A program made the position numbers and the translations under genes. From positions 62,001 to 126,000 of IMG/VR virus record IMGVR_UViG_3300030616_000016: a stretch of 64,000 nt of DNA, one strand, 5' to 3'. Shown here in pieces: positions 1 through 52,580 of the stretch. The notes beneath the pieces are model-generated. The model saw only the letters and a list, made by a program, of their open reading frames with translations, did no database searches and was not told the DNA's origin. Position 1 is the first letter of the stretch. Every line of letters starts with the position of its first letter.

Positions 1-304
1 TTGTTATAGTCCGAGGATTTAGTTCAAATAATCCAACACTCCCACATCCAAGACATCTTGGACACTGGATAGGTTTTCTGCGAATCGATCCTTTTCCATT
101 ACACAGATTACAAGTTTGCCTATATCTGAGATTTTGATTTAAGATATGAATCGACTCATTACGTGTCCGATTTTGTGGTTTAGGAGTTGCAGAATCCGTT
201 TTAGATTCCTTTTTAGACTCTTCTTTGCATGAGACTATGATGCTCACAAACATAAACATTGCAAATACTATAGCGATAGCTATTAAAAAACAAATACAAA
301 TCAT
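1..304 (-). CDS. Partial ORF running off the window: N-terminal hydrophobic segment plus DnaJ-type zinc-finger repeats
   Basis: Manual translation from ATG at 304: MICICFLIAIAIVFAMFMFVSIIVS...CNLCNGKGSIRRKPIQCPRCLGCGS; not in the ORF track because it is truncated. Confidence 0.6.
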   Translation of the reverse strand, partial: MICICFLIAIAIVFAMFMFVSIIVSCKEESKKESKTDSATPKPQNRTRNESIHILNQNLRYRQTCNLCNGKGSIRRKPIQCPRCLGCGSVGLFELNPRTIT

Positions 305-326
305 TGTCAAATCCTTTCATAATAAG

Positions 327-1502
327 TTATAATTTACCGGTCATAAATTTTATTGCTTTGCCAAATGAATCAACCTTATTAAGTTCAATTACATTGGCTA
401 CTTGGAACTCATTCCTGCCTTGTTTAGTTTTATTAGTACGTATACGTCCTCTAACAAGACATGTCTTGTTTGCTTCGCCAAGTTCTTCAAGTGTTTTCTT
501 CAAAGATTTCTCTGCTTTTTTATATGAAACAACTGGAGCTATGCTATGTCCATCTTCCATATAAAGAATACGCCTCTTTGATTCTTCAACTATGAATAAC
601 TGGCAGGCAACGGTTACGAACATCCAATGTTGCAATCTGCTATCTTCGCCCATAGCTACTCTAGATGCATCAGATAAAGTTTTAATATCACAATCCTTTA
701 TCCTCTCAAGTCTTTCTTTGTTGTCATCTAGAAATGGTGCGCTTTCAGATAGACTGAAACCAAGATGATAAAGCTCTTCTTTATGATACACATTTTTATC
801 CATAGGTTCACAGTCTAACATTTCTATATTAAATACTTCGTTCTTCTTTTCTTCGTCATTCAGAGTCTTGCGTTTCATTATCTTGTTAGACTCTTTTTTT
901 ATGTTCTCAATATTAATGACAATCCAATTTCTATTTGGCTTACCATCTTCTGTAGTTTCAGCTATTGGATCAAAGAATCCAATCTTTGCCAAAGCATATA
1001 AGGCTGATGTATATATGGTTTTATAATTATTAATATAAGCCCATATAAACTCTGTTAGACTGTCGAATGGTCCATACTTTTTAACCAGTTCTTCAATAGC
1101 TGAGGCAGCATTGCTATTCACATAGCGTATACCATCCATGCCTACTCTTATGCCGTACCCATTCTCTAATGGCTGGCATATTTGTGAGCATCCTTCTATA
1201 CTTGGCGGTCTAACTTCAAGCCCAGCAGATGTCGCTTCTTCAATATATTTACTGACAGTAGATTTGTTGTTGGACCTGGCATTAATCATTGCGCTTATGT
1301 ATTCTTCAAGATATAAGCATTTTAGGTATGCAGTCTTATAGGTAAGATAGGCATAGCTTACACTATGTGAGTTTTTTGATATAAGACCACTAGATAAGAT
1401 ATAATTATGGGGCTCGTTTTCCATTCTAATATTATATAGTCTACGCTTACCTAGTTTTCTTATCTTATTTATCTTTACTTTCTTCAATTGCAAGTTTTGC
1501 AC
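327..1502 (-). CDS. dnaE: DNA polymerase III alpha, C-terminal half, preceded by split-intein C-fragment (IntC about 1371-1487; likely TTG start at 1487)
   Basis: KKVKINKIRKLGKRRLYNIRMENEPHNYILSSGLISKN|SHSVSYAYLTYKTAYLK: intein blocks F/G ending in Asn with +1 Ser, followed by DnaE SH..Y..YLK, EY.SAM and HhH motifs. Confidence 0.93.
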   Translation of the reverse strand: MQNLQLKKVKINKIRKLGKRRLYNIRMENEPHNYILSSGLISKNSHSVSYAYLTYKTAYLKCLYLEEYISAMINARSNNKSTVSKYIEEATSAGLEVRPPSIEGCSQICQPLENGYGIRVGMDGIRYVNSNAASAIEELVKKYGPFDSLTEFIWAYINNYKTIYTSALYALAKIGFFDPIAETTEDGKPNRNWIVINIENIKKESNKIMKRKTLNDEEKKNEVFNIEMLDCEPMDKNVYHKEELYHLGFSLSESAPFLDDNKERLERIKDCDIKTLSDASRVAMGEDSRLQHWMFVTVACQLFIVEESKRRILYMEDGHSIAPVVSYKKAEKSLKKTLEELGEANKTCLVRGRIRTNKTKQGRNEFQVANVIELNKVDSFGKAIKFMTGKL

Positions 1503-16035: not shown

Positions 16036-16037
16036 AC

Positions 16038-19193: not shown

Positions 19194-19244
19194 TTGTGGC
19201 CACATAACTACACAAAAGTGTAGCTACATTTTTAGGGCACTTTA

Positions 19245-19460: not shown

Positions 19461-19499
19461 TGCAGAACTCCTTAAATAGGGTTCATGTTTTGTCAACGT

Positions 19500-20174
19500 T
19501 CAACTACAAGGCCACACTAGCCTGTAGTCCGCTGACCCTTTTAGAAACATTAATTCATCCATAGATAAATTATGTTCATTTGCAACTATAAATCCTATGT
19601 TTCCGTAGTCATCGAATCTCATAAGAGATATAAAGTTTTCTATTCCGAACCTATTTTTTGATTCGTTTCCACAATAAACGCAATTTGGAAATCCGTATAG
19701 CATTTTAGAACCACATAGACCACACTCTTCTTTAGACTCCAGTTTGTAAACTCTTAGTTCTTTTAGTATTCTTTCATTAATCATAAACGATTGTTGCCCA
19801 AGTTTTACCTCTGTACGTTCATGCAAATCTACAAGAGCATCAAATGGAATTCGATTGATCCAGTAATTTAATGGTCTTAAGCTAGCTGTTCTATTTCTAT
19901 ATATAAGTAAGTTAACTAGTATTTTGTCTGCACATATGGGAGAGCCTTCTTTAAAAATATATCCCATAATTTTATTAGTTCCAATAACATTTCTAGAGCT
20001 TCCAATTTCTGGCACTGCTAATGTTAAGCGATTTGGGCTTAGGACTATATCCCATTTCTTTGATAAATCTTGAGGCTCGTCTGGGTTGTGAGGAGTTATA
20101 TGCGCCAGCTTTTCTTCTATAGCTCCACGAAATATTGAGCTTTTTCTTCGCTCTAGACATTGCGACATATACAA
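19500..20174 (-). CDS. Hypothetical protein with double zinc ribbon (start may be downstream)
   Basis: CGLCG...CVYCG; the 5' end overlaps the UvrD gene by about 180 nt. Confidence 0.55.
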   Translation of the reverse strand: MYMSQCLERRKSSIFRGAIEEKLAHITPHNPDEPQDLSKKWDIVLSPNRLTLAVPEIGSSRNVIGTNKIMGYIFKEGSPICADKILVNLLIYRNRTASLRPLNYWINRIPFDALVDLHERTEVKLGQQSFMINERILKELRVYKLESKEECGLCGSKMLYGFPNCVYCGNESKNRFGIENFISLMRFDDYGNIGFIVANEHNLSMDELMFLKGSADYRLVWPCS

Positions 20175-21735
20175 CTCTCCTTTCGGACTCTATTTCGTCT
20201 TCTTCTACCATTGTGCATGGATAGTATCCTTCTTCCATCCCGCACATATAAACAATATCAAACTCAAGTCCCTTTACTCCGTGAACAGTAGCTATAGTCA
20301 CATCTCCTGCATCGTTATCTGAGTTGCTTGTAAGTTTGATCTTATTTACTAGGTCAATCATTGAGTCACAAGAGTCAGACATATAATCTATAATTTCATA
20401 TAAGGATATCTGATACTTACTCTCGTCCATTTCATCAAGGAGTTTACAAGCATCTTTGACTCCTTGCATATCATTGTTTAGGATCTTGTCTATTATCTCT
20501 ACTATGTCCTCATTATCAACAAGAATTTTAGATTTTTCTTGGCTATTTTCTCTGTTAATAAATTGGTTAAGAAATCGTTTGCCTAATCCTCTTTTCAAGT
20601 ATGCAAGAAATTGTGAGGTTCTTTCTATATTGATTCCGTCTTCTTTATTAATAGGATGAAGCCCACATATAAGATCAATAAGTCTTTTTGTCTTACCTCT
20701 TTCTGATAGTGACAGTCCACCTATTCTAGTATATGGTATAGCACGTTGATCAAAATATATAGCTACAGTATCTAGTTGTCTATGTGTACGACCTAATATA
20801 GCCACTGAATTGCCAGCTTCCATATATCTTTGTATGTCTCGTGCCAAAAACTGATTCTCATCAGATTCTGAGTTGAATGGATAGAAATCAACATTAGGTA
20901 TACTAGCTTCTTCTGCAGTAATTTCACTGCTATAAGTATCTGCATTGCAGGATATTAGTTTATTACAATATCCAGCAATATGATTGTCAAATCTCCATGT
21001 ATATGATAATGGAAGTACTTTGGCGCCTGATTCTTTTATGAGCATTTCTGTATTTTCGTAACATGCACCACGAAATTGGTACAAGCACTGATTTTGGTCG
21101 CCTACTACTGTGAATCCTCTGTTAAAATCATACGTAAGTTCTTTAACCATATTGTATTGAACAGTGTTGGTATCTTGCCATTCATCCACAATAATTCCAT
21201 CGCAACCTACGTCTCTCATATATTCTATGGAGTCGTAAAGAAGATCACTGAAGTCTTTGACATGGTTCTTTAGCTTGGTAGTTTTGTATATCTTAGCGAG
21301 AGAATCTAAGCTGTCTTGTACTGACAGATTATTTACTTCTACATTATTTTGAAGCTTAATCTTTGCAGCTTCAAGTAAAAGCTTATAGATATCACTGTCA
21401 GGAGAGTATCCCATTTTCTTTATACAGCTTCTTATCAACTCTGTAGATTCGTTCTGGTCAATAATCTCGAATTCTTGTTTGTTATTCTTGAGGAGTTGTA
21501 AGCCCAAGCCATGGAATGTTCCAATGAAAACAGCATTGTTCCCAGTTAGTCTACTTGTAAGTTCTTTTGCTGCCTTATTAGTAAATGTAATAGCAACGAA
21601 CTTGTAATCTATATCAGCAACACCATAAGCTAATGTGGTTGTTTTGCCACTGCCAGGCGCAGCCATAACTACGTTTTTGTTGGCTGGGTCTTTCATATGC
21701 AAGATAATTGCTTGCTGTTCTTCAGTTGGATTCAT
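19993..21735 (-). CDS. uvrD: UvrD/Rep/PcrA-family SF1 helicase
   Basis: AAPGSGKTT, ITFTNKAA, VDEWQDTN, VGDQNQCLYQFRGA, TVHGVKGLEF, ERRVVYVAMSRAK. Confidence 0.92.
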   Translation of the reverse strand: MNPTEEQQAIILHMKDPANKNVVMAAPGSGKTTTLAYGVADIDYKFVAITFTNKAAKELTSRLTGNNAVFIGTFHGLGLQLLKNNKQEFEIIDQNESTELIRSCIKKMGYSPDSDIYKLLLEAAKIKLQNNVEVNNLSVQDSLDSLAKIYKTTKLKNHVKDFSDLLYDSIEYMRDVGCDGIIVDEWQDTNTVQYNMVKELTYDFNRGFTVVGDQNQCLYQFRGACYENTEMLIKESGAKVLPLSYTWRFDNHIAGYCNKLISCNADTYSSEITAEEASIPNVDFYPFNSESDENQFLARDIQRYMEAGNSVAILGRTHRQLDTVAIYFDQRAIPYTRIGGLSLSERGKTKRLIDLICGLHPINKEDGINIERTSQFLAYLKRGLGKRFLNQFINRENSQEKSKILVDNEDIVEIIDKILNNDMQGVKDACKLLDEMDESKYQISLYEIIDYMSDSCDSMIDLVNKIKLTSNSDNDAGDVTIATVHGVKGLEFDIVYMCGMEEGYYPCTMVEEDEIESERRVVYVAMSRAKKKLNISWSYRRKAGAYNSSQPRRASRFIKEMGYSPKPKSLNISSARNWKL

Positions 21736-30459: not shown

Positions 30460-31626
30460 CTAATTCATCGAAAATTGCGTTCCATACTGGCTACGTCTTA
30501 CATCTTCTCCAAAGGCTTTAGGTTCCCCTTGCCCAGGGGTACAAAATGCAAAATTCAAAATATTACTAGATGCAAGGGCATCTCTATCGTGTTTGGCACC
30601 ACAAGTGCAAGTCCAATATCTGTCACTTAGCTTAAGATTATTATTTATAGCGCCGCACTGGTTACACATCTTGCTGGATGGTTCAAATCTTCCTATAGTC
30701 AAAACATGCTTTCCATACCAACCTGCCTTATACTCAAGAAAGGTACGAAAAGTATACCATCCAACATCAGAGATAGCCTTGGCCAAACAATGATTCTTCA
30801 CCATTCCAGAAACGTTTAAATCCTCAAGACACACTGCTTGGTTCTCGTCAATGAGCCTTTTGGACAATTTATGCAAAAAATCTTTACGTTGATTAGAAAT
30901 CTTCTCATGTATCAACGCTACCTTCCTACGAGCCTTGTTTCTATTTGAAGAACCTTTCTTCTTCTTTGATAATTGTTTTTGCTTTCTTGCCAATCTTCTT
31001 TCAAGTTTCTTTAGGTATCTTGGATTATCTATTTTCTCGCCTGTTGATAGTGTTGCAAAATGTTTTAATCCAACGTCAACACCTACACTATTATCTCGTT
31101 CAGGATTACATTTGATAGGTAATTCTTCTCCATTGTCAACCAAAATAGAAGCAAAGTATTTCCCAGAAGGAGCCATGAATATAGTTACAGTTTTAATATT
31201 GCCTTCAAATTGTCTATGGAATTTGCATTTGATGCCATCACGGAATTTCATTACATATAGCCTATTATTATCAAAATCCACATTACTTCCTTGTGGAAAT
31301 TGACAAGATTGCTTTTTGAATTTCTTCTTAAATTGAGGATATCTTGCCTGTTTCTTAAAAAACCGCCGGAAAGCATTGTCAAGGTTTCTAAAGGCCATTT
31401 GCAAAGATTGACTATTAACTTCCTTCAGCCAACCATGCTCAGATTTCATATGTTTCAATTGCTTTATCAAATCAAAACAGGAAGGAGATTTCCCCGTTTT
31501 TTGATAAGACTCTGTTTTCTTTTGGAGTCCCAAATTGTATATGAACCGTACACAACCAAAATGCTTCACAAGAAGCTCCTGTTGTTTTTTGTTGGGGTAT
31601 ATTTTGTATTTATATGCTCGTATCAT
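30460..31626 (-). CDS. tnpB: TnpB RNA-guided endonuclease, apparently intact
   Basis: MIRAYKYKIYP HTH; RuvC motifs GVDVGLK, LEDL, DRDALAS; CNQCG/CTCG zinc ribbon. Confidence 0.95.
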   Translation of the reverse strand: MIRAYKYKIYPNKKQQELLVKHFGCVRFIYNLGLQKKTESYQKTGKSPSCFDLIKQLKHMKSEHGWLKEVNSQSLQMAFRNLDNAFRRFFKKQARYPQFKKKFKKQSCQFPQGSNVDFDNNRLYVMKFRDGIKCKFHRQFEGNIKTVTIFMAPSGKYFASILVDNGEELPIKCNPERDNSVGVDVGLKHFATLSTGEKIDNPRYLKKLERRLARKQKQLSKKKKGSSNRNKARRKVALIHEKISNQRKDFLHKLSKRLIDENQAVCLEDLNVSGMVKNHCLAKAISDVGWYTFRTFLEYKAGWYGKHVLTIGRFEPSSKMCNQCGAINNNLKLSDRYWTCTCGAKHDRDALASSNILNFAFCTPGQGEPKAFGEDVRRSQYGTQFSMN

Positions 31627-31635
31627 TATATTTAT

Positions 31636-31664
31636 AGTATAGCACAGGTTTCTGTAAATGTCAA
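31636..31664 (-). promoter_or_regulatory. sigma70 promoter in the IS left end driving tnpB
   Basis: TTGACA-17 nt-TATACT. Confidence 0.75.
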
Positions 31665-31732
31665 GAGAAAAACGCATTCTTATATCCCCATGGCTAAAGC
31701 CAGGGGTCTTACGAATGCACCTTGATAAAAGA

Positions 31733-36799: not shown

Positions 36800-38455
36800 T
36801 TATTTTTTAATACTGATAGAGAACATTTCTTTATCCTCTGTAAAGTATACACTGGTACCATCAGTGTATAGTGGCATTGATGAGTCTATCGGCGGATTAG
36901 TAATAATGCGTTTTTGATTATCTTTAGAGATCTCAATCTTTTGATCGCTAAATACATCAATGCAAACTCCATTATTAAGAACAATGAAATTGATATTATC
37001 AACATCGCGCTCTTCTTTGTCTAGCAGAATACCTTTATTTTCTTTGCTGCATAGTTTGAATCGGAATCTATAATATTTACCAGATTCTTCTGCTATGCAT
37101 ACTAGAATTCCTCTGCTATGTTTTGCATTGATTATTCTAAGTCCATGGAGTTCCTCAATAGGACCTAGAAAACTACCAGAATCTTCTAATGGCGCATATG
37201 CCCAACATTTGTCTAGGAAGTTGCTAATTACTACTCCACTAAACATTTGATTCATAGTACCAAGATTTTGGGATGGATTCGAGCATGCCGCGCTCTTATT
37301 CCCCATATTTTTTGCATATACCTCATATACTGAGGCGCCGTTTCTGCAAAATATACTACCATTGTATATCATGGCTTTGTCTGCGGCAAATTTACCTGGT
37401 ATATCCGTTTCTATTTCTACACAGCCATTATCAATTATGCCTAACACAGGGTCAGGAGATAGATTGCATAGAAATGCCTTTTTATTGGATATATCCTTAA
37501 ATATGGATTTACCACAGTATATTGCCTTATCCGTAAATGTATAGAAAATACCATTTAGGAATTGTATTGATTTAATCGGCTCATTGTACTTATACATTGA
37601 TTTAATGTCAAAATTTGCTGTGCTTCTTATAGTCTTTTGAACCATAGCTATATTAATTGTAGCGTCAGGTTTAGGTGGAGCGCTGCGTTTATTCTCAATG
37701 AATATTGACTTAAACCACTCCATATGAGCTTTAGGAATAACTGAGAAGTCTTGACATACGGATGGAATGGTAACCTTACTATCAAATACGGATATACCAT
37801 CATCCATTCGCTTAGTAAATTCTCTTGGTTTATAGTCTGGGTGTTTACCCTTATAAGGATGGATACCAACATAAAGCTGAAATGCTATTACTGCAAACGA
37901 GAACCAATCGCTTAGTTCTGTGAACTTTTTGGCTAAGCGGTCTCTTATTGAATCCATAATAGCATTAGCTGGAAATGACTTTGTCTGATAACTGTCAACG
38001 TCAATAAAGTAAGGTACTTTATGACCTTTGTCTATCAGAAAGTTCATTTCATTCATATCTACTATCAGGCATTGTTTAGAATGAATGTGCTCGACCGTGT
38101 CTTGTATATTGCGCACAATTTCTAATACTTGATTAGGAGATATATTATTATCTTTTCTGTACTGCTTAGTAAAGAGCTTGCATAGAGCACTTGTCTCTTT
38201 AATATACTTCATTGTATATCCGATGACATTGCTTGTCTTTTTATCGCAAACAATATCTTCCGGTTTGATAACATTGCCGGCTGTTATATAGCCAAGCTCT
38301 TCAATCTTTCTTAATGGTATCATATGCTTGATATCATTATAAATCTTGAAGGCAATATTGTCTTTTTTATATACAGAACCTTGACCACCAGATGCAATAA
38401 AATCATTGTCTTTCAGGTCAAATGAAGCCTTTGTTCTATTTACAATGACTCTCAT
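36800..38455 (-). CDS. Ser/Thr protein kinase-like protein
   Basis: ASGGQGSVY, AFKIY, VDMNEMNFL, IDVDS, DWFSFAVIAFQL...HPY. Confidence 0.85.
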   Translation of the reverse strand: MRVIVNRTKASFDLKDNDFIASGGQGSVYKKDNIAFKIYNDIKHMIPLRKIEELGYITAGNVIKPEDIVCDKKTSNVIGYTMKYIKETSALCKLFTKQYRKDNNISPNQVLEIVRNIQDTVEHIHSKQCLIVDMNEMNFLIDKGHKVPYFIDVDSYQTKSFPANAIMDSIRDRLAKKFTELSDWFSFAVIAFQLYVGIHPYKGKHPDYKPREFTKRMDDGISVFDSKVTIPSVCQDFSVIPKAHMEWFKSIFIENKRSAPPKPDATINIAMVQKTIRSTANFDIKSMYKYNEPIKSIQFLNGIFYTFTDKAIYCGKSIFKDISNKKAFLCNLSPDPVLGIIDNGCVEIETDIPGKFAADKAMIYNGSIFCRNGASVYEVYAKNMGNKSAACSNPSQNLGTMNQMFSGVVISNFLDKCWAYAPLEDSGSFLGPIEELHGLRIINAKHSRGILVCIAEESGKYYRFRFKLCSKENKGILLDKEERDVDNINFIVLNNGVCIDVFSDQKIEISKDNQKRIITNPPIDSSMPLYTDGTSVYFTEDKEMFSISIKK

Positions 38456-39291
38456 GGCTTATCCTTAAGCAGTGTAGCACATGCTATATCATCAAAGTGC
38501 TTATTGTTTATTTTGGAATCCATGATGCGTATTTTCTTCATTCTTCTTTTTACAAACTCTCCTTTGAAGGTTTTATATACAGTCATTCGTATAGCGTTAT
38601 CAAGCACACTTGTATTTTCAAAAGAGCTTATACCATCAGTGAACAGGCTTATGCTCATTCCTTCTGCCATTGGCGCACTAGACATTATGTATGGCTCGAA
38701 CATGGGGATTGTAGAGCTCTTAAAGTCTTCGTCTGGGTTATATGACAATACTGTTTTTTCTGGATTGCCCAATATATCCATAGTATTCATATAGTCTTTA
38801 ATCTTTTCATCTTCCATGCGATATGCAAGATAGTATGGCATGTTAGATGTATATGATATTTCTTCAATACGAATCCATGGATTTGGGTCATTCGCTCTAT
38901 CAAAACCATCATTAAAGACAACTACTCCATCTCCCCATACTGCTATGCCAAATCCCTCATTATTGGCTATTACTACCATAAGCGTGGCATAGAATGTCTG
39001 GATGTCAAGACAAAGAGCTATTGCTACTTTTGATAGCGCTCCCAACACTTTATTTTCAAATGAACAAAGAGCAGTTGATAATGTCTTGTGTCCAAACATA
39101 ACTATTGAGCTTCTTAATGCTTGTTCTGCAGCAATTCCAAGTATTTTTGCACCAAGGTCTGTGTTTTGTGCAGAAGAACAGCCGTCACAGACGATACCAT
39201 AGGAATAACCATAGATATCGCCTGTGATAGCATAATCTTCACACATATCATGACTGGCACCAATTTCTACAAAACTATCTTTCTGTATCAT
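38452..39291 (-). CDS. PP2C-family phosphatase
   Basis: HDMCEDY, VCDGCSSA, GDG, LFTDG, HFDDIA. Confidence 0.85.
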   Translation of the reverse strand: MIQKDSFVEIGASHDMCEDYAITGDIYGYSYGIVCDGCSSAQNTDLGAKILGIAAEQALRSSIVMFGHKTLSTALCSFENKVLGALSKVAIALCLDIQTFYATLMVVIANNEGFGIAVWGDGVVVFNDGFDRANDPNPWIRIEEISYTSNMPYYLAYRMEDEKIKDYMNTMDILGNPEKTVLSYNPDEDFKSSTIPMFEPYIMSSAPMAEGMSISLFTDGISSFENTSVLDNAIRMTVYKTFKGEFVKRRMKKIRIMDSKINNKHFDDIACATLLKDKP

Positions 39292-39307
39292 TGGTACTCC
39301 CAGTCAT

Positions 39308-40057
39308 TTAGAAGTTAAGAATTGAAGATGCCGAGCCGGATCCAAGAGACTGTGATTGTGAGGATATGCTTTGACTCACAAATTCAGCCAGCTTTGCAAG
39401 CTTGGATGGAGTAGCTTCTCCGACAGATACGTATTTATCAAGGTTTGCATTATCCTTGAATGTAGTCAAGAAATTCTTGACTGCAGGATCTTTATCAATC
39501 CCGATAAGAACCGTAATAATTGATTCGAGGCTTTCTTCTCTTGTGATATCATCTACTAACGTAGCAACTTGTACTGGCGCATTATTTGATTGATTATCAG
39601 CGCCATCTGTAATGATAAATACAATTGCATTTGTTAGGAGATCTACTTTATCATACATCTGCTTGCTATACTGATGTGTTGCTTCGATGCCTTCATATGT
39701 TGCATCAAATAATGCAGTTGTACCGCCTGTACGGATGATATTAGAGTATTCATCATCACTAATATCACTTAGGAGGCGGAAACCATGCATTTCGTTCAGA
39801 TTAGCATTGAATGTAGTGAAGCGAACCATTAAGTTTTCTGCACGTGGAGACTTTTTGCATGATTCGATTACAGTTTTCAGCATATCCTCAATATCATCTT
39901 TGTATGGAGACACTGAAGAAGATACGTCGATAATAATTGAAACGAGTGTATATTCAGAAGCACCTAGTTCATCAAGCTTTACAGCACTGAATCTGAAGTT
40001 TGATGCAGTCTGCATACTGGTTATGTTTGCAAGATCTTTATCCATTAATCTTGGCAT
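39308..40057 (-). CDS. vWA-domain (TerY-like) protein
   Basis: IIDVSSSV MIDAS motif, GTTALFDA, IITDGADN. Confidence 0.85.
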   Translation of the reverse strand: MPRLMDKDLANITSMQTASNFRFSAVKLDELGASEYTLVSIIIDVSSSVSPYKDDIEDMLKTVIESCKKSPRAENLMVRFTTFNANLNEMHGFRLLSDISDDEYSNIIRTGGTTALFDATYEGIEATHQYSKQMYDKVDLLTNAIVFIITDGADNQSNNAPVQVATLVDDITREESLESIITVLIGIDKDPAVKNFLTTFKDNANLDKYVSVGEATPSKLAKLAEFVSQSISSQSQSLGSGSASSILNF

Positions 40058-40059
40058 GG

Positions 40060-41046
40060 TTATTTCCTTTCTTTGTTAAGCCTGTTTCCTTCTCCTAAAT
40101 GCATAAGGGGAAGCGGTTTAGGGCTATCACCATTTAGGAAGTATACCTTGGTAGCCGGGTCTTTTGTAATTGTACCTAGTGCTTTAAGTGCTTCAAGCTG
40201 GATATATGCAGGATTATTTGCAATAGCATCGTTAACTTTCTGAATTTCATATGCTTTTGCGTCTGCAAGGATCTTCTGTTTTTCTGCTGAAAGCATTGCG
40301 GCGTCTTTATCTGCCTGAGCAGTTTTAACTTTCTTCTGCTGTTCAGTCTCAAACCTGCGCAACTCTGCTTTCTCACGTTCAGCTTCCTGCTCGCGTTTCT
40401 TCTTACTCTCAACACCTTGCTGGATTGTGTTGGGAAGTTGAATATTTCTAATGAGAACAGCTTCAACATCAAGGCCCTTTGGTGCAACGTATTCTTTAAT
40501 TGAAGTAAGAAGATTTGCCTGCATCTTTTGCTGAATTTCTTCCCTAAAGAATGACTCTGCAGTTTTCACACTTTTACCTTGTTCTCGCAATAAGCTTCGG
40601 AACTTGGGTAACATGTGTACTTCCATAAGGTCTTTAGGATTACCGGTTTCTTGCAGAATGTCTGGAGCCATAGACTTGATAATTCGATACTGACAGCTTA
40701 CATCGAATGTCGTAACAAGCTGGTCCATACTTGGGATGGGAACCTGGCTCATTGTAATACTTTTCTGACGACAATCGAATTCTTCCCAATCATACAAAGG
40801 ATTGGTAAGGTGAATGCCTGCTTCATAGGGCTGATCAACGACTTTACCAAAGAATGTAGCTACTCCAATATGTCCTGGAGGTATTGAGATAACACATGAA
40901 GCGATGAGAGTAATAGCGCCGACGGCTCCTACCAGTAGACCGCCAAGAATATAAGGACGCCTTTTTTCTTCTGATTTAGCCATAAGACCATATACAAACA
41001 CCAACAAACCGATTAATGCAATTATAATACCAAGAGCAAGTATCAT
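40060..41046 (-). CDS. SPFH/Band-7 (prohibitin-like) membrane protein
   Basis: Two N-terminal TM helices, IPPGHIGV...FGKV, VEAVLIRNIQLP, coiled-coil tail. Confidence 0.88.
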   Translation of the reverse strand: MILALGIIIALIGLLVFVYGLMAKSEEKRRPYILGGLLVGAVGAITLIASCVISIPPGHIGVATFFGKVVDQPYEAGIHLTNPLYDWEEFDCRQKSITMSQVPIPSMDQLVTTFDVSCQYRIIKSMAPDILQETGNPKDLMEVHMLPKFRSLLREQGKSVKTAESFFREEIQQKMQANLLTSIKEYVAPKGLDVEAVLIRNIQLPNTIQQGVESKKKREQEAEREKAELRRFETEQQKKVKTAQADKDAAMLSAEKQKILADAKAYEIQKVNDAIANNPAYIQLEALKALGTITKDPATKVYFLNGDSPKPLPLMHLGEGNRLNKERK

Positions 41047-42000: not shown

Positions 42001-42196
42001 GCTGAACCTTTCCTCTCTATTAATTTGTTTTAACCAAAAATTCACCAAACAACACAACTTGCTTATTAAATGATAATTAGATAGTTACTTAGATAATCAA
42101 ATTATTTGATAGATCGGTAACATATCTCAATTATGCAATTTTTTGGTAATATATGTATATCACTGTGCCTTAAAATGAGTACCTATTATCGTTTAT

Positions 42197-42443
42197 CAAG
42201 GTGCATTCGTAAGACCCCTGGCTTTAGCCATGGGGATATAAGAATGCGTTTTTCTCTTGACATTTACAGAAATCTGTGCTATACTTTTGCTAATGATCGA
42301 AAACCAAGATCATTGGCAAAGAATTTAGATACCGCAGGGCATGCGGAAATTTACGCCTTTGGAGAAGATGTAAGACTTGTCTGCTTGAAAGCAGTCTTCA
42401 GTGAATTAGGAAGCCCCCGCCTTTAGGCGTGGGGTAATGTCAC
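42197..42443 (+). mobile_element. 247-bp non-autonomous derivative of the IS200/IS605 element retaining both ends, the promoter and an omegaRNA-like scaffold
   Basis: The left end (caaggtgcattcg...ttgaca-17 nt-tatact) is nearly identical and the right end (gaattaggaagcccccgcc...taatgtcac) identical to 30426-31724; preceded by TTTAT. Confidence 0.92.
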
Positions 42444-42447
42444 CTGA

Positions 42448-44118
42448 TTAGTTTATAAGGCAAAACAGATACTTCTGAATTCTGTCACTGCCTGTTGCAT
42501 ATTCGTCTATCAGGCGATATAAGAGCTTGTCCCAGCCTTTAGATAGCATCAACTGCATTACAGTGATGTATATCCTTGTTCCAGACCTCTTACCACTATT
42601 TGCATATATTCCATCATCAGATAGCTTACGACTGCATGCATGAGTATTTGTCTGGTGGCTGAACTTATCTAATACTATCCAGAACACTTTCCCAGACCAT
42701 GCCTCAACTGTCTGTCCGTTATAAGTATGCTTTTGTGGCTTGCATTCTTTTATAAGAGCAGATGGTATATTCCCATCTTCTCCTTCTAGAAAGTGAGGAA
42801 CGGGCGCCGGCCCTGATTCCTCTGCAATATTATTAAGCATAGCTTCTACTATCTGACCTGGATTCCTACGCTTTAGAGTTGCAAGAGCGTTGGTTACCAC
42901 TTCTGCTGGTTTGCCATCTATCTTAGGCATTTGCTCGTCTGGTATAATATTTACTATACCTTTATTACCGTGACGATTTGTAATTTTGTCGCCACTTCTG
43001 AGAATATGAAATCTCTCGTATTCGACAATAAGTTTTGTACAAACTGTGTTTGCTACTTTTGTTCTTATCTCACTGATATTAGACAGTTTAGCTTCACGCT
43101 TGACATGACATTTAAGCGTGATTGTTTCTTCTCCATCAGAATAAGAACCAATTATCTGATTTGGTCTTACAATGTCTCCGGCTTTGGCTTCCATCTTTAG
43201 GCTTTGTTTGCACCATCCTGGTACTACGAATGTCTGTTTCTCAGGAATGACACATGTCATTTTTCTAGCTGCTGACTTACTCATAACAATCTGTTCTTTG
43301 TATACACCAGGCATGATTGCATGAACTGTAAGTAAGTGCTTGCCATTAAGATTGTTATCATAATCTTCTGGAAACACCATAGGTTTATCTGGACTAACTA
43401 GCTTGCTGGAAGCCTTGAAATTAGATGCAGTGGTTCTGCGGCGATTATATTCTGGTACAATAAGATTCTTATTGAGTATATCGCAATAAACCCGACCTCT
43501 TTTGGTGAAGCATCCAATATCGTTTATTTTGCATTCTTCAGCCATGTACATTGTGCGACCACAATTCCCCGATGACTGACTTATACTTGTCCAATCAAGA
43601 ATGCCTTCTGTATTGAATGGCATAAATTCATCCGTTCGTTCTTGAAATAGCTCTAATGATATTTTGGGTCCATAGTGAGTAGCTATTCCCTTTACGACAT
43701 GAGATAATCTTGAAGTTTTAAGTAAATTATCGAGCTTCATTTGAGCTGTGGTAGAATCTTCTTGATGTCCGAACATAAAGAAGTCTGACAGTTGTGTAGC
43801 ATATGCTTGCTTAATGAATTTAAGAAGAAGCTCGTATGGTGTTGATAAATATGTGTGATTAATATTCATACATCTGTTATTAAAGATTGGCATTGGATTA
43901 AGTGTATAGCATAATTGCCGGCTTATTCCATTTACAGAAAACATACCCTTGTTATCAATCTTAGGTATATTTAGTTTTACGACTGTTTGCATGCTCTGGG
44001 ATGCCTCTTTAACAAGCATTTTTGTATGAAATAGGTCATCATATTCTTCTATATGACAGTCAACAGGCAAACAATTACATATAGGAAACAATCTTGCAAG
44101 ATGAGACTTATTCATCAT
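42448..44118 (-). CDS. Compact RNA polymerase beta-like subunit
   Basis: GMFSVNG; GDKITNRHGNKGIV...MP...G.PAEVV.N...RRNPGQIVE matches the RpoB GDK..RHGNKG block. Confidence 0.88.
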   Translation of the reverse strand: MMNKSHLARLFPICNCLPVDCHIEEYDDLFHTKMLVKEASQSMQTVVKLNIPKIDNKGMFSVNGISRQLCYTLNPMPIFNNRCMNINHTYLSTPYELLLKFIKQAYATQLSDFFMFGHQEDSTTAQMKLDNLLKTSRLSHVVKGIATHYGPKISLELFQERTDEFMPFNTEGILDWTSISQSSGNCGRTMYMAEECKINDIGCFTKRGRVYCDILNKNLIVPEYNRRRTTASNFKASSKLVSPDKPMVFPEDYDNNLNGKHLLTVHAIMPGVYKEQIVMSKSAARKMTCVIPEKQTFVVPGWCKQSLKMEAKAGDIVRPNQIIGSYSDGEETITLKCHVKREAKLSNISEIRTKVANTVCTKLIVEYERFHILRSGDKITNRHGNKGIVNIIPDEQMPKIDGKPAEVVTNALATLKRRNPGQIVEAMLNNIAEESGPAPVPHFLEGEDGNIPSALIKECKPQKHTYNGQTVEAWSGKVFWIVLDKFSHQTNTHACSRKLSDDGIYANSGKRSGTRIYITVMQLMLSKGWDKLLYRLIDEYATGSDRIQKYLFCLIN

Positions 44119-45634
44119 TATCTTTCTCCAATACTAGGACTCTGTCCCTGAGATACTTGATGAGTTGATTTTTGTCTTCGTTATTCAGTACATTCATGAT
44201 GTGTTCTATGGCTAGAGTATAGAAAGCGTCGCCTTCTACCATGCTTAGTCTAGGATCAAACACTGCATAGAATATAGAATTCTCTGCGTCTACTATATCA
44301 TTAATTAACTTAGGGTTATCCCTATTATATAGTAGATTAAGATATGGCTCGACTTGTTCTACGTCTATCTCACAATCTTTAAGTATTTCGCGAGCTACGT
44401 TTATGTCGCTAATACCATCATTTTTAAGTACTTTAATGAGACTGACATATGATTCATCAAGTTTATGTTTAGAATCAAATAGGCGCTGGTTTGCTTGTTC
44501 TGATAGCTTATCTGCAGCTTTGGCTATTTCTATATTGCCATCTGCCAATACTCTTGCACGACATGCTGCGGCTCCAGCCTTGCCAATCTCTGATTTCTGG
44601 AGAATGAGGCCTTTTGCAACCTTGATGTCGTCTTCTCGTATTTCAGATAAGGACTTGCCTTTAAAGAATCCTGTAAGGTCCTTAACGTCAATGTCTTCTG
44701 CATTACACATGGCTTTTATTGTCTCAGAATTTTCTGTGTCAATAAGGTCATGTGGTCCAATTACTCTGAATTTTGAGATTCTTTTTACACCATCATCTAT
44801 TATGTTTTCCAAGTCAGGGGTTTCTTCTTGATTATCGATAAGAAACTCTTTGTCCCACTTTGTTGTGGACCAGTCTTCTTCTATATCAATATCAGGATAC
44901 CCAAGTACTGTTTCAATTAGATCTCCATCGGAATCAGCACCCATGCCATCAGTAATAATGGGATGAATAATGATCCTGTTGGATTTAGTAGGAAGTATGT
45001 ATAACTTGCGCATAGAATCGTTGTGTAGCAAGGGATTTCTGAATGCAATTACATAAGGCTTCCCTTCTGTATTGGACTCTTCTTTCCTTTCTTTCCACTT
45101 TTCTATGAACTTGACATATATATGCTGAGGTAATTTTATGTGGTCATAAGGCATTCTGAAGTCGGTAGCAATATGGCCTTTACCAGAATATAATGCTCTG
45201 AAACCAAGGATATATGTATTAAACAATCCTGATTTACCGACCAGCTCTTTAGCCATTATTTTCCATACTCTTTCAGCACTATCTTCCACTACTTCTGTGT
45301 CAATATTGCCAATACCAAGTTGGCTAATTGACACAAGTAGTTTTTCTGTAGCGATTTGTATATCATTTAATACTATGTGCCCGGCTACTGGTCCTGGCAT
45401 ATTCATATTAGGGATTATTACTTTTTGAACCTTCTTGCCGAAGTAATTATTTATTTCAATCGGCAAGTGTACATACCCGCCATACTGAAGTACATCTTCA
45501 TCAAGTATGGTGTTTTTGAGGTTCTTATTAAGTAAATCCGGTTTTGAAATGATCGCTTTTGTTGTATTCGAAAATAGATTTCTTCGTATCTGTATATTAC
45601 CACACTGTTTCGATAAACTCGTCAGATTCATCAT
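44108..45634 (-). CDS. Compact RNA polymerase beta-prime-like catalytic subunit
   Basis: GKSGLF..YILGFRALYSGK, FRNPLLH, IHP...GADSDGD (equivalent of NADFDGD with all three Asp). Confidence 0.88.
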   Translation of the reverse strand: MMNLTSLSKQCGNIQIRRNLFSNTTKAIISKPDLLNKNLKNTILDEDVLQYGGYVHLPIEINNYFGKKVQKVIIPNMNMPGPVAGHIVLNDIQIATEKLLVSISQLGIGNIDTEVVEDSAERVWKIMAKELVGKSGLFNTYILGFRALYSGKGHIATDFRMPYDHIKLPQHIYVKFIEKWKERKEESNTEGKPYVIAFRNPLLHNDSMRKLYILPTKSNRIIIHPIITDGMGADSDGDLIETVLGYPDIDIEEDWSTTKWDKEFLIDNQEETPDLENIIDDGVKRISKFRVIGPHDLIDTENSETIKAMCNAEDIDVKDLTGFFKGKSLSEIREDDIKVAKGLILQKSEIGKAGAAACRARVLADGNIEIAKAADKLSEQANQRLFDSKHKLDESYVSLIKVLKNDGISDINVAREILKDCEIDVEQVEPYLNLLYNRDNPKLINDIVDAENSIFYAVFDPRLSMVEGDAFYTLAIEHIMNVLNNEDKNQLIKYLRDRVLVLEKDNDE

Positions 45635-45977
45635 CTATGTCTCCGTCTTCAATTTTTGTTTTATACCAGAAAGATATTGTATCATTTCCATAGTTCTTTC
45701 CAGGGATTCTGGAACCATGGAGTTCTCCGAATGCTGCGTTGCTTTCGCAACTCCAGGGAAGATTTATATGCATCTTATTCTTTAATCTTCCGTCTTCGGC
45801 TCTTTCTAACTTTCTGACTTTAACAAAAACTGGAACAGGCACGTATACAGAACCATCTTCTTCCTTTTTAACTGGCAATCCGCATATTTTGCCCTCTTGA
45901 TCCTTTGAACTTGTGAATCTTACTGCTTGATCGATAATCTCAGTGAAGCGCTGATTAGGCTTGAGAAACGTTAGCAA
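45597..45977 (-). CDS. Hypothetical protein with acidic tail
   Basis: ORF track, AGGAG RBS. Confidence 0.6.
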   Translation of the reverse strand: MLTFLKPNQRFTEIIDQAVRFTSSKDQEGKICGLPVKKEEDGSVYVPVPVFVKVRKLERAEDGRLKNKMHINLPWSCESNAAFGELHGSRIPGKNYGNDTISFWYKTKIEDGDIDDESDEFIETVW

Positions 45978-46085
45978 TTGGCAACTCCTTACGTCTTTTT
46001 TGAGGTAGGAAGGGAATAAAAAGAGCTGGAATACTTACCAATAAAGGTAAATATTCCAGCTCAATCCATGTTTGGAGACATTGGA

Positions 46086-46904
46086 TTAGATTTCGTCGAC
46101 GCTGAACTCTCCGACAACACCACTGTTACTTGCACTGAGTACATCAGACGGATCTCCAATGAGAATATCGTCTGTAGCAACGTTATTGTCGCTGTTTGAC
46201 CTTGCATTATTGTTACCATACATGATCCTATCGATCACTATACGGTGGAACAGAGGTTGTACAATTGCTCTTTCATTATTGTCTCCGACCCATCCTTCGA
46301 GGGTCTCAGCAGGACCTGGATCTGATTCCAGATGACCAATAATATAGGAGCGAGGAGAATCTTCGATATTGAGTCGATGCTCACGACGCATGATATGAAT
46401 CCATGCAGGAACGTCATCAAGTGACTTTCCCATGATGACACGAGACTTACTATTATGGTAAGGCTTGGCCTCACCTTTGGCAATAATTGATCCGGCACAC
46501 TGAGTAGAATGACGTGTCTGCGGGATTTCTTCATCCGCAACAGTTACGATTCCGTCTACATAATTAAGCCTGAATCCTTCCTTGGTAACTACGTTTCCTT
46601 CCTCATCAGTAGCCTTTATAACTTTACCATCTTCAGTATTGTATGTAAAGGGCATATCGATGATTTTGGAGCGCATATTGCCAATTACAATGACGTATTC
46701 GCCATGTTTGATCTCGCGTTTTGATACTACCTGAATGATGTTTTCAAAGAAAGAACCACCATTGCGAGCCCTCCGTTTTGCAGATACAGTCGACAGAAAA
46801 CCGAGTCCGTCAATGTGAATCCCACCAAAGCTCTGACCGATAACGGTTACACCCACACTGGGTCTATCCGCATTGTTTGCACTATTGTTCCTTGTAATGA
46901 ACAT
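46086..46904 (-). CDS. Hypothetical protein, possible single-stranded DNA-binding protein
   Basis: Beta-rich pattern, YVIVIGNMRS, flexible acidic C-terminus. Confidence 0.4.
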   Translation of the reverse strand: MFITRNNSANNADRPSVGVTVIGQSFGGIHIDGLGFLSTVSAKRRARNGGSFFENIIQVVSKREIKHGEYVIVIGNMRSKIIDMPFTYNTEDGKVIKATDEEGNVVTKEGFRLNYVDGIVTVADEEIPQTRHSTQCAGSIIAKGEAKPYHNSKSRVIMGKSLDDVPAWIHIMRREHRLNIEDSPRSYIIGHLESDPGPAETLEGWVGDNNERAIVQPLFHRIVIDRIMYGNNNARSNSDNNVATDDILIGDPSDVLSASNSGVVGEFSVDEI

Positions 46905-51569: not shown

Positions 51570-52580
51570 TTACCAAGGCCAGTTAGGGACCTCGATCTTA
51601 TGAACATGTTTCAAGTGATCGAATGCATAAGGCTGGAAAGGCGCTTCGACGCCATAATGAGCACGATAAGCAACTTCCCACCAGTGAGACAGGAATATCT
51701 TAGTAGCCCATCTCTTACTTCTCATATGAATCTGACTATTGGGGAGCTTGCCTTCGCGATATATTGCCCTCTGTTTATGACCAGGCACTCTTCGAAGAAC
51801 TTCTCGTGCAATATGCGCATATTCCTTGGCTTCATTCTTACGCGACTCGATAATCTTCCTTTCAACAACAAGATGTCCATAGAGATCTTTTGGATTGTTG
51901 CATGTCATATTGAAAGACTCACCGATTTTCCAGCAGAGTGTTTTCAGTTCTGAATTCCAGGGACGCATTGACAGACCTCTGTAAAGCGTCTTGCCTGTAT
52001 GAACTCCGCCTCCTTTCTGTAATGAGAGACGAAGTGCGGTAGCTGCTTTGATTCCTCCGGCTTCTTGTATCGCATTTGCTACCTTAATAGCATCTTCTTC
52101 AGATACTCTTCTTGTACTATCAGGATTAATACCGGCTTCGTCAACCATGATTTCTCTTGTAACTTTCTTGCCAAGCCAGCGCTTTCCGTCTACAAGACCA
52201 GCATAGCTATAGATATGTCCTGGAGTCTTAGCTTTGTCCATATCTATATGGGCAATAAGACCGGCGCTGATAACAGGGCCAATACCTACAACTGATTGAG
52301 CCCATGTACCAATTTTTGTTGATAATGAGAAATGATTGAGCGCGAGCTTCACCTGATTCTCAAGACGCTCCGCATTCTTAAGAAACCAATCAAGCACTTC
52401 CATTGGAGGGTCGTCTACGCCCTGCTCTGCTGCTCTAAGCTGACCAGCAAGCCTGATTCTCTGGTTCTGCATGGTATAATAACTATCTACCAGATAGCGG
52501 GCTTCCTGACGCGTAATCTTTCTTGACGCGTTTCTTATGTCTTTACCTACTCTTTCAATAATTTCTTCAATAGCCATCAC
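51570..52580 (-). CDS. IS110/Nop-domain protein lacking a RuvC domain (TasA-like RNA-guided DNA binder)
   Basis: Coiled coil YYTMQNQRIRLAGQLR; HhH-like SVVGIGPVISAGLIAHI; IYSYAGL; RPWNSELKTLCWKIGESF; QIHMRSKRWATKIFL; no DEDD N-terminus and no SG serine after YAGL. Confidence 0.8.
   Translation of the reverse strand: MMAIEEIIERVGKDIRNASRKITRQEARYLVDSYYTMQNQRIRLAGQLRAAEQGVDDPPMEVLDWFLKNAERLENQVKLALNHFSLSTKIGTWAQSVVGIGPVISAGLIAHIDMDKAKTPGHIYSYAGLVDGKRWLGKKVTREIMVDEAGINPDSTRRVSEEDAIKVANAIQEAGGIKAATALRLSLQKGGGVHTGKTLYRGLSMRPWNSELKTLCWKIGESFNMTCNNPKDLYGHLVVERKIIESRKNEAKEYAHIAREVLRRVPGHKQRAIYREGKLPNSQIHMRSKRWATKIFLSHWWEVAYRAHYGVEAPFQPYAFDHLKHVHKIEVPNWPW

Follow-up and report, generated by a model that had tools for sequence, protein, structure and literature searches.

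Multisubunit RNA polymerases (RNAPs) of cells are machines of about 400 kDa, and how much of that mass is needed for templated, processive transcription is a long-standing question. In bacterial RNAP, the two large subunits, beta' (about 1400 residues) and beta (about 1340 residues), each contribute a double-psi beta-barrel to a single active site. Several viral and plasmid enzymes have departed from this plan. In the jumbo phages phiKZ and AR9 (PBS2), beta and beta' are each split into halves, which gives enzymes of four to five subunits that lack sigma and alpha and usually come as virion and non-virion sets (PMC7598289; PMC7824862). The phiKZ and AR9 non-virion enzymes also require gp68 and gp226, respectively, subunits that are unrecognisable by sequence. 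YonO and gp99 of Bacillus phage 0305phi8-36 are single-chain, RdRP-like two-barrel enzymes, which lack the flap insert and the trigger loop (PMC7824862; PMC5467207). The crAss-like phi14:2 gp66 and the virion and non-virion RNAPs of Thermus phage P23-45 are highly diverged single-chain enzymes revealed by structure or remote homology, often embedded in giant virion or tape-measure proteins and without detectable sequence similarity to cellular subunits.

Outside phages, the RNAP of the yeast linear plasmid pGKL2 (a VLE) totals about 1100 aa. It keeps the conserved beta and beta' regions with shortened spacers, including the bridge helix and trigger helices in its model, but beta is fused to the N part of beta' (K2ORF6p, 974 aa) and the C part of beta' is a separate small protein (K2ORF7p, 132 aa) (PMC6211774). 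This enzyme is eukaryotic, cytoplasmic and poxvirus-like, and associates with a capping enzyme. In baculoviruses and nudiviruses, which are insect viruses, LEF-9 (about 490–520 aa) is a beta'-like subunit that works with LEF-8 (about 875 aa) in a four-subunit enzyme. Finally, the deep-branching phage RNAPs called mReC (Weinheimer and Aylward, 2020) were defined by beta and beta' of at least 800 aa matching COG0085/COG0086 (PMC7481178).

Here, we describe two adjacent genes of an uncultivated marine-sediment phage (genome of 231,647 bp, 95% complete) that encode shrunken but apparently complete versions of beta' and beta. They lie in a 64,000-nucleotide stretch of this genome, hereafter the window, and are probably the genes of a very small transcription enzyme of a kind not yet described in any cultured phage. 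The features of the locus are the following:

44108..45634 (-), beta'-like subunit gene, 508 aa
44921..44941 (-), catalytic Mg loop GADSDGD, residues 232-238 of the beta'-like protein
44543..44650 (-), 36-residue helix 329-364 with invariant K347 and near-invariant G351 and G354, probable bridge helix (inferred)
44423..44533 (-), helix-loop-helix 368-404 with AADKLSEQANQRLFDSKH, probable trigger loop (inferred)
42448..44118 (-), beta-like subunit gene, 556 aa (540 aa if started at residue 17)
42958..42993 (-), GDKITNRHGNKG, residues 376-387 of the beta-like protein, with the two active-site lysines K378 and K386
43291..43302 (-), YKEQ, residues 273-276, counterpart of the beta FED/YED segment
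45597..45977 (-), 126-aa ORF directly upstream, overlapping the beta' start by 38 nt, candidate accessory subunit (speculative)
46023..46062 (-), hairpin with a 17-bp stem followed by TTTTTATT, between the 272-aa and the 126-aa ORFs
46086..46904 (-), 272-aa ORF upstream of the hairpin, a neighbour not shown to belong to the enzyme

A sequence-only reading of the window had described a beta'-like gene preceding a beta-like gene, with GADSDGD, the two beta lysines and YKEQ in place of the beta ED motif, a total of about 1060 aa, and no visible sigma or alpha gene. Each of these observations is confirmed. The total is 1064 aa, and the two genes overlap by 11 nt, with a GGAG 8–9 nt before the downstream ATG. 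The start of the beta-like gene is somewhat uncertain, since the JGI annotation calls it from residue 17. The resemblance to RNAP is far beyond chance: Pfam Rpb2_6 (PF00562) matches the beta-like protein at 2.4e-13, the beta'-family profile matches PDB beta' at 1e-27, and the beta-family profile matches PDB beta at 4e-12. In contrast, the beta'-like protein has no Pfam or PHROG hit, and genome annotation pipelines therefore miss this subunit entirely. The interpretation offered in that reading, a highly reduced two-subunit double-psi-barrel RNAP that may use three small neighbours as specificity factors, is only partly supported: its main inference is borne out, whereas the role given to the neighbours is only partly plausible. 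The word "minimal" also needs qualifying, because YonO and the yeast linear-plasmid RNAP are as small or smaller.

The beta'-like protein covers the full extent of its cellular counterpart. An AF2 model based on a 4-sequence alignment reached a pLDDT of only 37, but the 74-sequence family alignment gave a confident model (pLDDT 91.6). Structural alignment of this model (VIA-align) places about 450 of its 508 residues over E. coli beta' 28..1353 and Rpb1 3..1427, with Z scores of 15–16.5. In the ESM Atlas, the model aligns with a TM score of 0.76 over residues 10-498 to proteins carrying Rpb1_2, Rpb1_3 and Rpb1_5, while N-terminal-half beta' proteins align only up to about residue 334. LEF-9 and LEF-8 clusters also appear among structural and feature look-alikes, but these Foldseek matches are weaker than those to bacterial beta'.

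These results bear directly on the possibility that the locus is a phiKZ/AR9-style split polymerase, of which only the beta' N-half and the beta C-half lie here. The subunit sizes near 500 aa resemble the jumbo-phage pieces, BFVD hits include phage proteins of 430–530 aa that align over about 240 columns, and the genome is jumbo-sized. However, the beta'-like model aligns to both halves of beta', with residues 335-498 on the Rpb1_5 region. Additional large-subunit fragments, which had been named beforehand as evidence that would count against a two-subunit enzyme, were looked for in the 95%-complete genome, and no second double-psi-barrel gene, no Rpb1_5 hit and no paralogue of either family was detected. 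Moreover, phiKZ and AR9 chains are weak or absent among the PDB profile hits (7ogp_C at E 0.002 and 7s00_C at 6.5e-11 for beta, none in the top 60 for beta'), and sequence similarity to these enzymes is confined to the barrels. The half-subunit reading is thus very unlikely and is already largely refuted. The locus has one set of two unsplit, much smaller chains. What it shares with the phiKZ and AR9 enzymes is that it encodes a phage enzyme derived from bacterial-type RNAP, without detected sigma or alpha, in a jumbo genome.

Conservation in the family supports the two-barrel assignment of the beta'-like chain. D234, D236, G237 and D238 of the catalytic loop are invariant in 74 of 74 members, as are R199 and P201 in FRNPLLH, which align to NRAPTLH of beta' and correspond to the invariant Arg-x-Pro (Rpb1 R446/P448; PMC2919709). 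Switch-2 Lys (Rpb1 K332), a marker of DNA-dependent enzymes, is present as K134 in GKSG (K in 62 and R in 5 of 74). For the funnel Gly/Lys (Rpb1 G750/K752), bridge helix and trigger loop of two-barrel enzymes, the fold covers the Rpb1_5 region, and helix 329-364 and hairpin 368-404 fit the bridge helix and trigger loop in order and length. In the hairpin, E379 is kept in 69/74, Q383 in 72/74, K389 in 72/74 and H390 in 51/74. The best local hhalign hit of residues 364-393 anywhere in bacterial beta' is the AAQSIGEPGTQLTMRTFH segment, with the same E-x3-Q-x6-H register. However, this hit, the only sequence support for the assignment, is not significant on its own (E 0.5), and a forced global alignment of the beta' C-terminal part to bacterial beta' was unreliable, so both assignments remain inferences made without a residue-level structural superposition.

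In the beta-like protein, residues 258-536 are collinear with bacterial beta from GYNFED, the "ED" segment, to GGQRFGEME near its C-terminal end (hhalign probability 99.1, E 6.5e-19), whereas the N-terminal 230 residues have only weak sequence links to beta. G376, D377, K378, R382, K386 and G387 are invariant in 15 of 15 members, and K378 and K386 align to the two lysines of GDKxxGRHGNKG (Rpb2 K979/K987; E. coli K1065/K1073). The second DNA-dependent marker (Rpb2 R1020) is R417, kept in 15 of 15 in the RRNxGQ segment, which aligns to SRMNxGQ. About 95 residues separate the ED-like segment from GDK. The alignment runs collinear through the flap region, but Biotin_lipoyl and NqrA barrel-sandwich hits there are weak (E 0.005–0.07) and occur in some members only.

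The most unusual feature of the beta-like chain is its acidic segment, in which GVYKEQIVMS pairs with GYNFEDAIVIS, placing K274-E275 under the E-D of beta. Across 15 members, position 274 is E in 8, K in 6 and Q in 1, and position 275 is D in 9 and E in 6. The fifth carboxylate (Rpb2 E836), present in nearly all two-barrel enzymes except YonO and RdRPs, is thus absent from the window protein, and the otherwise universal Asp (Rpb2 D837; E. coli D814), one of eight residues reported invariant in all two-barrel RNAPs (PMC2919709), is Glu. This could suggest that the pair is catalytically impaired or repurposed, for example as a primase-like or RNA-templated enzyme or as a regulator, and RNAP-based priming has been proposed for some jumbo phages (PMC7824862). 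However, an acidic residue is kept at the second position in 15 of 15 members, and the K-E form is shared by 6 intact relatives at 27–66% identity to the window protein, which implies selection. All other catalytic residues are invariant, K134 and R417 are present, and the genome has its own DnaG-DnaB primase-helicase. We consider this reading unlikely.

The two chains are predicted to bind each other with the barrels face to face. The complex model scores an ipSAE of 0.88 against a best control of 0.00, a mark reached by 58 of 80 solved complexes and 2 of 110 mismatched pairs. Run agreement is at least 89% and partner pLDDT at least 81 (81–84 for the beta-like chain), although the score may partly reflect the model's memory of solved RNAPs. 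Both catalytic loops lie in the predicted interface (beta' 233-237; beta 374-378 and 386-388), and the beta'-like helix contacts the beta-like chain along residues 329-351.

In the whole genome, no Sigma70_r2 and no alpha NTD were found, and only one sub-threshold r4-like HTH was detected (E 0.014). Some specificity factor is therefore expected, and the sequence-only reading had proposed the ORFs at 45597, 46086 and 47007. Only the 126-aa ORF (45597) is a plausible accessory. Its homologues sit at the same position in the related loci L013 and L070 (E 1e-25 to 1e-40), linked through L070 to the related loci L014 and L066, so it is conserved in the subclade of the window. It has no Pfam or PHROG family and no informative Atlas hit. 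The 272-aa ORF (46086) is separated from the unit by the strong terminator-like hairpin. It has clear homologues only in the two nearest relatives, L013 (2.5e-65) and L070 (5.9e-17), is 15% identical in alignment to its L014 counterpart, and has no family match and no usable Atlas look-alike. The 107-aa ORF (47007) has no homologue in any related locus. Only about 45 nt remain between the hairpin and the 126-aa ORF, with AAGGAG ahead of its TTG start, which suggests that read-through or attenuation is more likely than a separate sigma70-type promoter. K-mer searches for a shared upstream promoter motif found nothing above shuffles, and the window has no tRNA or Rfam family.

It is possible that the pair is only the catalytic core of a larger phage enzyme, in which the 126-aa product, other unannotated proteins or pieces too diverged to recognise are obligatory for assembly, DNA binding or initiation, as gp68 and gp226 are in phiKZ and AR9. 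It would then not be a true two-subunit enzyme. A small ORF (83–168 aa) overlapping or abutting the beta' start is present in most related operons, and many ORFs of the genome have no annotation. Highly diverged extra subunits cannot be excluded. On the other hand, the small ORFs of the two subclades show no similarity in profile comparison, which argues against an ancient obligatory subunit. In addition, the heterodimer is predicted confidently without partners, and both chains span the full beta' and beta topology. We regard this alternative as tentative, but it is the strongest of those considered.

The beta'-then-beta tandem recurs in at least 12 distinct metagenomic phage contigs, with only 20–30% identity between subclades, and about 75 beta'-like clusters of 450–600 aa exist. 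In contrast, tblastn of four family beta' proteins against 50,697 GenBank phage records found no family member; the best hit, Vibrio phage D69, carries a 1527-aa beta-to-beta' fusion, which is a different architecture. A scan of IMG/VR mostly returned other viral RNAP kinds, namely beta-to-beta' fusions of about 1000 and 2060 aa and split forms, and only one locus, L018, shared this architecture. A scan of GTDB genomes found only barrel-region matches to other RNAP-like genes (some in long beta-like ORFs) and no family member, and so gave no clue to the host. Literature searches found no description of this architecture, although such absence from the papers searched is not proof of novelty.

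Compared with bacterial RNAP, which provides the best sequence and fold matches, the pair has the same two-barrel active site (DxDGD, R-x-P, GDK..KG, an R1106-like Arg and switch 2), but at about 40% of the length, in the reverse of the rpoB-rpoC order, without detected alpha or sigma, with lobes, clamp head, jaw and lineage insertions mostly missing and with E-D replaced by K-E. It also falls short of the size criterion of mReC enzymes. In contrast to the yeast plasmid RNAP, beta' is one chain that precedes a separate beta. Kinship with YonO is rejected: here there are two polypeptides, and gp99 of 0305phi8-36, although this phage is among the nearest cultured TerL relatives, matches the beta' family profile only around the catalytic loop (i-E 1.6e-5 in a one-sequence search) and does not match the beta profile. 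Unlike gp66 and the P23-45 enzymes, this pair is readily matched to beta and beta'.

Taken together, we consider it likely that the two genes encode a heterodimeric, multisubunit-type DNA-dependent RNAP in which each large subunit has shrunk to about 40% of its cellular length while keeping the catalytic framework. In this view, the 508-aa chain is a whole beta', with clamp-helix and switch-2 segments, the R199-x-P201 element, the Mg-binding loop, a long helix that is most likely the bridge helix and a short helical hairpin that is most likely an insertion-free trigger loop carrying K389-H390. The 556-aa chain would be a whole beta that has lost most of the lobe/protrusion mass but keeps the NMQRQ-like segment, the acidic Mg-B/NTP segment, a reduced barrel-sandwich "flap" insert, K378, K386, R417 and the C-terminal segment that grips beta'. 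The two barrels would meet to form one active site. The gene overlap would imply coupled translation and 1:1 stoichiometry. The pair is single-copy and lies on the minus strand in the replication/early-middle gene block, next to Pol III alpha, RecA, UvrD and DEAD helicases, and not in the structural block. In this model it most likely acts as a non-virion polymerase, made after infection, that transcribes phage middle/late genes independently of host sigma, and a phage factor, possibly the 126-aa protein, may give promoter specificity. Three giant ORFs gave no RNAP signal in Pfam, PHROG or PDB sequence searches, so that a virion RNAP is neither shown nor excluded. Homology, fold coverage, residue conservation, synteny and predicted pairing are shown by the analysis, whereas activity, timing, self-sufficiency and the bridge-helix and trigger-loop assignments are inferred. 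No RNA run was found to hold the sequence of this metagenomic locus.

A bolder hypothesis, which we regard as possible but less likely than not, is that the heterodimer of about 120 kDa is self-sufficient. It would then be the smallest known enzyme of the cellular (multisubunit) lineage to keep a bridge helix, a trigger loop and a flap-type insert in separate beta' and beta chains. It would recognise its own promoters by itself or with a single non-sigma factor of about 14 kDa, and would define a widespread, so far uncultivated phage RNAP family with beta'-to-beta gene order.

YonO, gp66, the P23-45 enzymes and the yeast plasmid RNAP each gave a partial answer to the question of how much of RNAP is needed, but they are either single-chain and very diverged or fused in other ways. 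The present family keeps two separate chains that are plainly beta' and beta, and apparently retains the bridge helix, trigger loop and flap base while lacking alpha, sigma and most peripheral domains. It would be a tractable 120-kDa model for the minimal multisubunit catalytic core, and could show how RNAP assembles without alpha and how promoters are recognised without sigma. It also marks a clade of large uncultivated phages that carry Pol III alpha, of which this genome alone was seen to carry CRISPR-Cas genes, and these phages probably run their own transcription.

The window forms positions 62001-126000 of a linear IMG/VR virus record of 231,647 bp (contig Ga0272442_10000021), which has an estimated completeness of 95% and originates from a marine sediment metagenome. 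The following ORFs are central to the analysis:
44108..45634, minus strand: beta'-like gene, 508 aa, with GADSDGD at residues 232-238
42448..44118, minus strand: beta-like gene, 556 aa, with YKEQ at residues 273-276 and GDKITNRHGNKG at residues 376-387
45597..45977: ORF of 126 aa, overlapping the start of the beta'-like gene by 38 nt, with GGAG in front

The beta'-like and beta-like genes overlap by 11 nt, with a GGAG shortly before the downstream ATG. The JGI annotation calls the beta-like gene 16 codons shorter. However, residues 10-16 are conserved in two relatives, so the long form was kept, although its start is treated as uncertain. What the sequence-only reading had stated about the sequence of this pair is correct in every point. 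Downstream of the beta-like gene, a 390-nt stretch of the window (42058-42447) has no convincing ORF (only a 97-aa plus-strand ORF) and no tRNA or Rfam match.

Pfam identified Rpb2 domain 6 in the 556-aa protein (2.4e-13) but found nothing in the 508-aa protein, and a comparison with PHROGs gave the same outcome. Among 5.8 billion clustered proteins, only three close relatives of each protein exist, and these lie on the same three contigs. An exhaustive profile search with the beta'-like alignment found 404 proteins, of which about 75 cluster representatives score below 1e-10; most of these are 450-600 aa long, match over most of the query, and carry xxDxDGD near residue 200-250. A profile of 74 of them matches bacterial beta' in the PDB at 1e-27 across the region from switch 2 to the catalytic loop. 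Similarly, the beta-like profile matches PDB beta at 4e-12.

In the ordinary jumbo-phage situation, beta and beta' are each cut into halves encoded at different loci, and the question of whether the 508-aa protein is a whole beta' or a half therefore separates that situation from the minimal enzyme proposed in the sequence-only reading. With the 74-sequence alignment, AF2 gave a confident model (pLDDT 91.6, pTM 0.83). VIA-align places about 450 of its 508 residues along the whole of E. coli beta' (28..1353) and yeast Rpb1 (3..1427), with Z 15-16.5 and an rmsd of about 4 A. In the ESM Atlas, the best match aligns residues 10-498 (TM 0.76 by the query) to an 888-aa protein carrying Rpb1 domains 2, 3 and 5, whereas proteins that are N-terminal halves (Rpb1 domains 1-3 only) align only to residues 1-334 or fewer. 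Residues 335-498 therefore correspond to the C-terminal, Rpb1_5 part of beta', which holds the bridge helix and trigger loop. The model has a 36-residue helix (329-364) with invariant K347 and near-invariant G351 and G354, followed by a helix-loop-helix at 368-404. The segment AADKLSEQANQRLFDSKH (373-390) has the same register as the trigger-loop segment AAQSIGEPGTQLTMRTFH, and the best local hhalign hit of residues 364-393 anywhere in bacterial beta' is exactly that segment, but the score alone is not significant (E 0.5). The assignments of bridge helix to 329-364 and of trigger loop to 368-404 are thus considered probable.

For the beta-like chain, hhalign aligns residues 258-536 collinearly with bacterial beta, from LGKNLLVAFMPWxGYNFED through the flap region, GDKxxGRHGNKG and NPLGVPSRMNxGQ to GGQRFGEME (probability 99.1, E 6.5e-19). 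A weaker hit places residues 229-246 on the NMQRQAVP segment (E 0.005), and HMMER saw a faint match of IPKID..G.F..NG..R to the IPLM..G.F..NG..R segment near the N-terminus of beta. In addition, weak biotinyl/lipoyl and NqrA barrel-sandwich hits in some members fit a reduced flap insert. In the complex model described below, the pLDDT of this chain is 81-84.

Catalytic residues were examined against the eight that Ruprich-Robert and Thuriaux list as invariant in all two-barrel RNAPs, together with their markers of DNA-dependent enzymes (PMC2919709). The family keeps R199-x-P201 and D234/D236/D238 in 74 of 74 members, and K378, K386 and R417 in 15 of 15. The switch-2 position K134 is K in 62 and R in 5 of 74. 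The exception is the acidic pair of beta: the position of Rpb2 D837 is E275 here (D in 9, E in 6 of 15), and that of E836 is K274 (E in 8, K in 6, Q in 1). The K-E form is shared by six intact relatives, so it is tolerated, whatever its effect on the second metal.

A complex model of beta' residues 10-500 with beta residues 48-556 supports binding. Its ipSAE is 0.88, against 0.00 for the best of three controls; that mark was reached by 58 of 80 solved complexes and 2 of 110 mismatched pairs. The runs agree in at least 89% of contacts, and the partner pLDDT is at least 81. However, solved RNAPs may inform this score, which shows likeness to the known assembly rather than affinity. The approximately 470 predicted contacts include the DxDGD loop (233-237) facing beta 374-378 and 386-388, and the beta C-terminus (512-556) wrapping beta' 137-160.

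Six-frame searches of the whole genome with both family profiles found only these two genes. Pfam Rpb2_6 was found once, and Rpb1_2 only as a weak hit to the same beta' gene. Rpb1_5, Sigma70_r2 and the alpha NTD were not found in the genome, and Sigma70_r4 gave one sub-threshold HTH in a 176-aa ORF. Pfam scans of 46 further large ORFs revealed replication, recombination, CRISPR-Cas, structural and mobile-element proteins but no RNAP part, although diverged accessory proteins cannot be excluded by these searches. Three consecutive giant ORFs of 1812, 1834 and 2283 aa lie outside the window (genome positions 177403-195196, plus strand; section L010 of the genome, 403-18196), and the last has SNase and endolysin-like parts. 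Pfam, PHROG and PDB sequence searches gave no RNAP signal in these ORFs, a result that neither shows nor excludes a hidden virion RNAP.

The same scans provided a view of the remaining gene content. Outside the window, on the minus strand at genome positions 14942-21250 (sections L003, 14942-18731, and L004, 1728-4250), the phage carries type I-E-like CRISPR-Cas genes: Cas7e/Cse4 (379 aa), Cse1 (504 aa) and a Cas3 HD-helicase (840 aa). At genome positions 43593-45647 on the plus strand (section L005, 7593-9647), a Volactin-like actin homologue is interrupted by an intein with a LAGLIDADG domain, and at 155776-158877 on the plus strand (section L008, 12776-15877) the 1033-aa large terminase matches relatives in two pieces, which suggests an insert. 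Other ORFs also carry LAGLIDADG domains. The window itself contains the following further genes:
327-5049, minus strand: DNA polymerase III alpha, apparently split into two ORFs of 893 aa (PHP, NTPase and finger domains) and 391 aa (HHH_6)
9438-11667, minus strand: a reverse transcriptase (RVT_1, 382 aa; DGR, retron-like or other) directly next to RecA (374 aa), with no group II intron or other Rfam family in the window
30460-31677 and 51570-52580, minus strand: mobile-element genes inside the phage, a TnpB/OrfB_IS605 protein with a Cas12f-like TNB domain (405 aa) and an IS110-family transposase-like ORF (336 aa)
36800-41046, minus strand: four genes in a row, a Ser/Thr-kinase-like protein (551 aa), a PP2C phosphatase (279 aa), a 249-aa ORF without a family, and an SPFH/Band 7 protein (328 aa), possibly a signalling or host-takeover module a few genes downstream of the RNAP genes

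The gene order is shared beyond this genome. In at least 12 distinct metagenomic phage contigs (designated L013, L014, L015, L018, L066, L067, L068, L072, L077, L079, L089 and the P0016 contig), a beta'-like gene of about 500-580 aa is followed by a beta-like gene of 517-613 aa. In most of them the two overlap or abut, and in a few there is a gap of up to about 560 nt; their identity to the window proteins is down to 20%. One further relative, L075 (27-5122), has the same order with about 2 kb inserted between the genes, possibly a mobile gene. These contigs share Pol III alpha, UDG, ThiF, glycosyltransferases and helicases with the window.

The sequence-only reading had also suggested that three small neighbouring ORFs may serve as specificity factors. 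A small ORF sits just upstream of beta' in most of the related contigs. The 126-aa protein of the window has homologues in L013, L070 (another related locus), L014 and L066, but the counterparts in L015, L068 and L072 form a second family with no profile similarity to the first. The 272-aa ORF has clear homologues only in L013 and L070, and the 107-aa ORF has none in any related locus. A hairpin with a 17-bp stem and a T-run lies between the 272-aa and 126-aa ORFs, leaving about 45 nt before the latter. The RNAP unit is therefore 126 aa-beta'-beta, probably reached by read-through.

No phage among 50,697 GenBank records carries a detectable family member, and a pattern scan of 185,579 GTDB species genomes found none either. 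The nearest cultured TerL relatives are Moorella phage MTATph1, Bacillus phage 0305phi8-36 and Acinetobacter phage ME3. Phage 0305phi8-36 has the YonO-like single-chain gp99, which matches the beta' profile only around the catalytic loop and does not match the beta profile. In ME3 (vB_AbaM_ME3, KU935715.1, around 115262-115405; locus L154), there is a 5422-aa ORF, and a BFVD model piece from this phage, presumed to belong to that ORF, gave the highest query TM (0.41) among viral structure hits to the beta'-like model, which suggests an RNAP module embedded in a giant protein. The phiKZ/AR9 enzymes are split differently and are only weakly similar, and mReC polymerases have subunits of at least 800 aa. 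The closest in design is the yeast linear-plasmid RNAP (974 + 132 aa), which also keeps the conserved regions with shortened spacers but fuses beta to part of beta'. IMG/VR phage contigs also encode single-chain beta-to-beta' fusions, of about 1000 aa (contigs L027, L032, L035 and L053) and about 2060 aa (L022, L029, L034, L048 and others), in which both barrels are detected by the family profiles; the 1000-aa class is similar in size and order to the large subunit of the yeast plasmid RNAP. LEF-9 and LEF-8 of baculoviruses are another size analogue. In the literature examined, we found no description of a beta'-then-beta pair of about 500 aa each.

The proposal of a reduced two-subunit phage RNAP is thus partly supported: its core is supported, whereas the role suggested for the neighbours is unproven. 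While the sequence features, the homology and the shared gene order were established directly, and the pairing of the chains rests on a predicted complex, RNA synthesis by the pair, its mechanism and its timing are inferred. In this view, the pair most likely forms a 120-kDa RNAP whose active site is built as in cellular enzymes. Crude k-mer counts found no shared promoter motif. The genes are single-copy and lie in the minus-strand replication/early-middle block, flanked by kinase, phosphatase and SPFH genes on one side and small unknown ORFs on the other, far from the plus-strand structural block. This favours a non-virion enzyme that would take over middle/late transcription. Within the multisubunit-type two-barrel RNAPs, which are already known, what is new is the miniaturised two-chain form with reversed gene order, known so far only from uncultivated phages.
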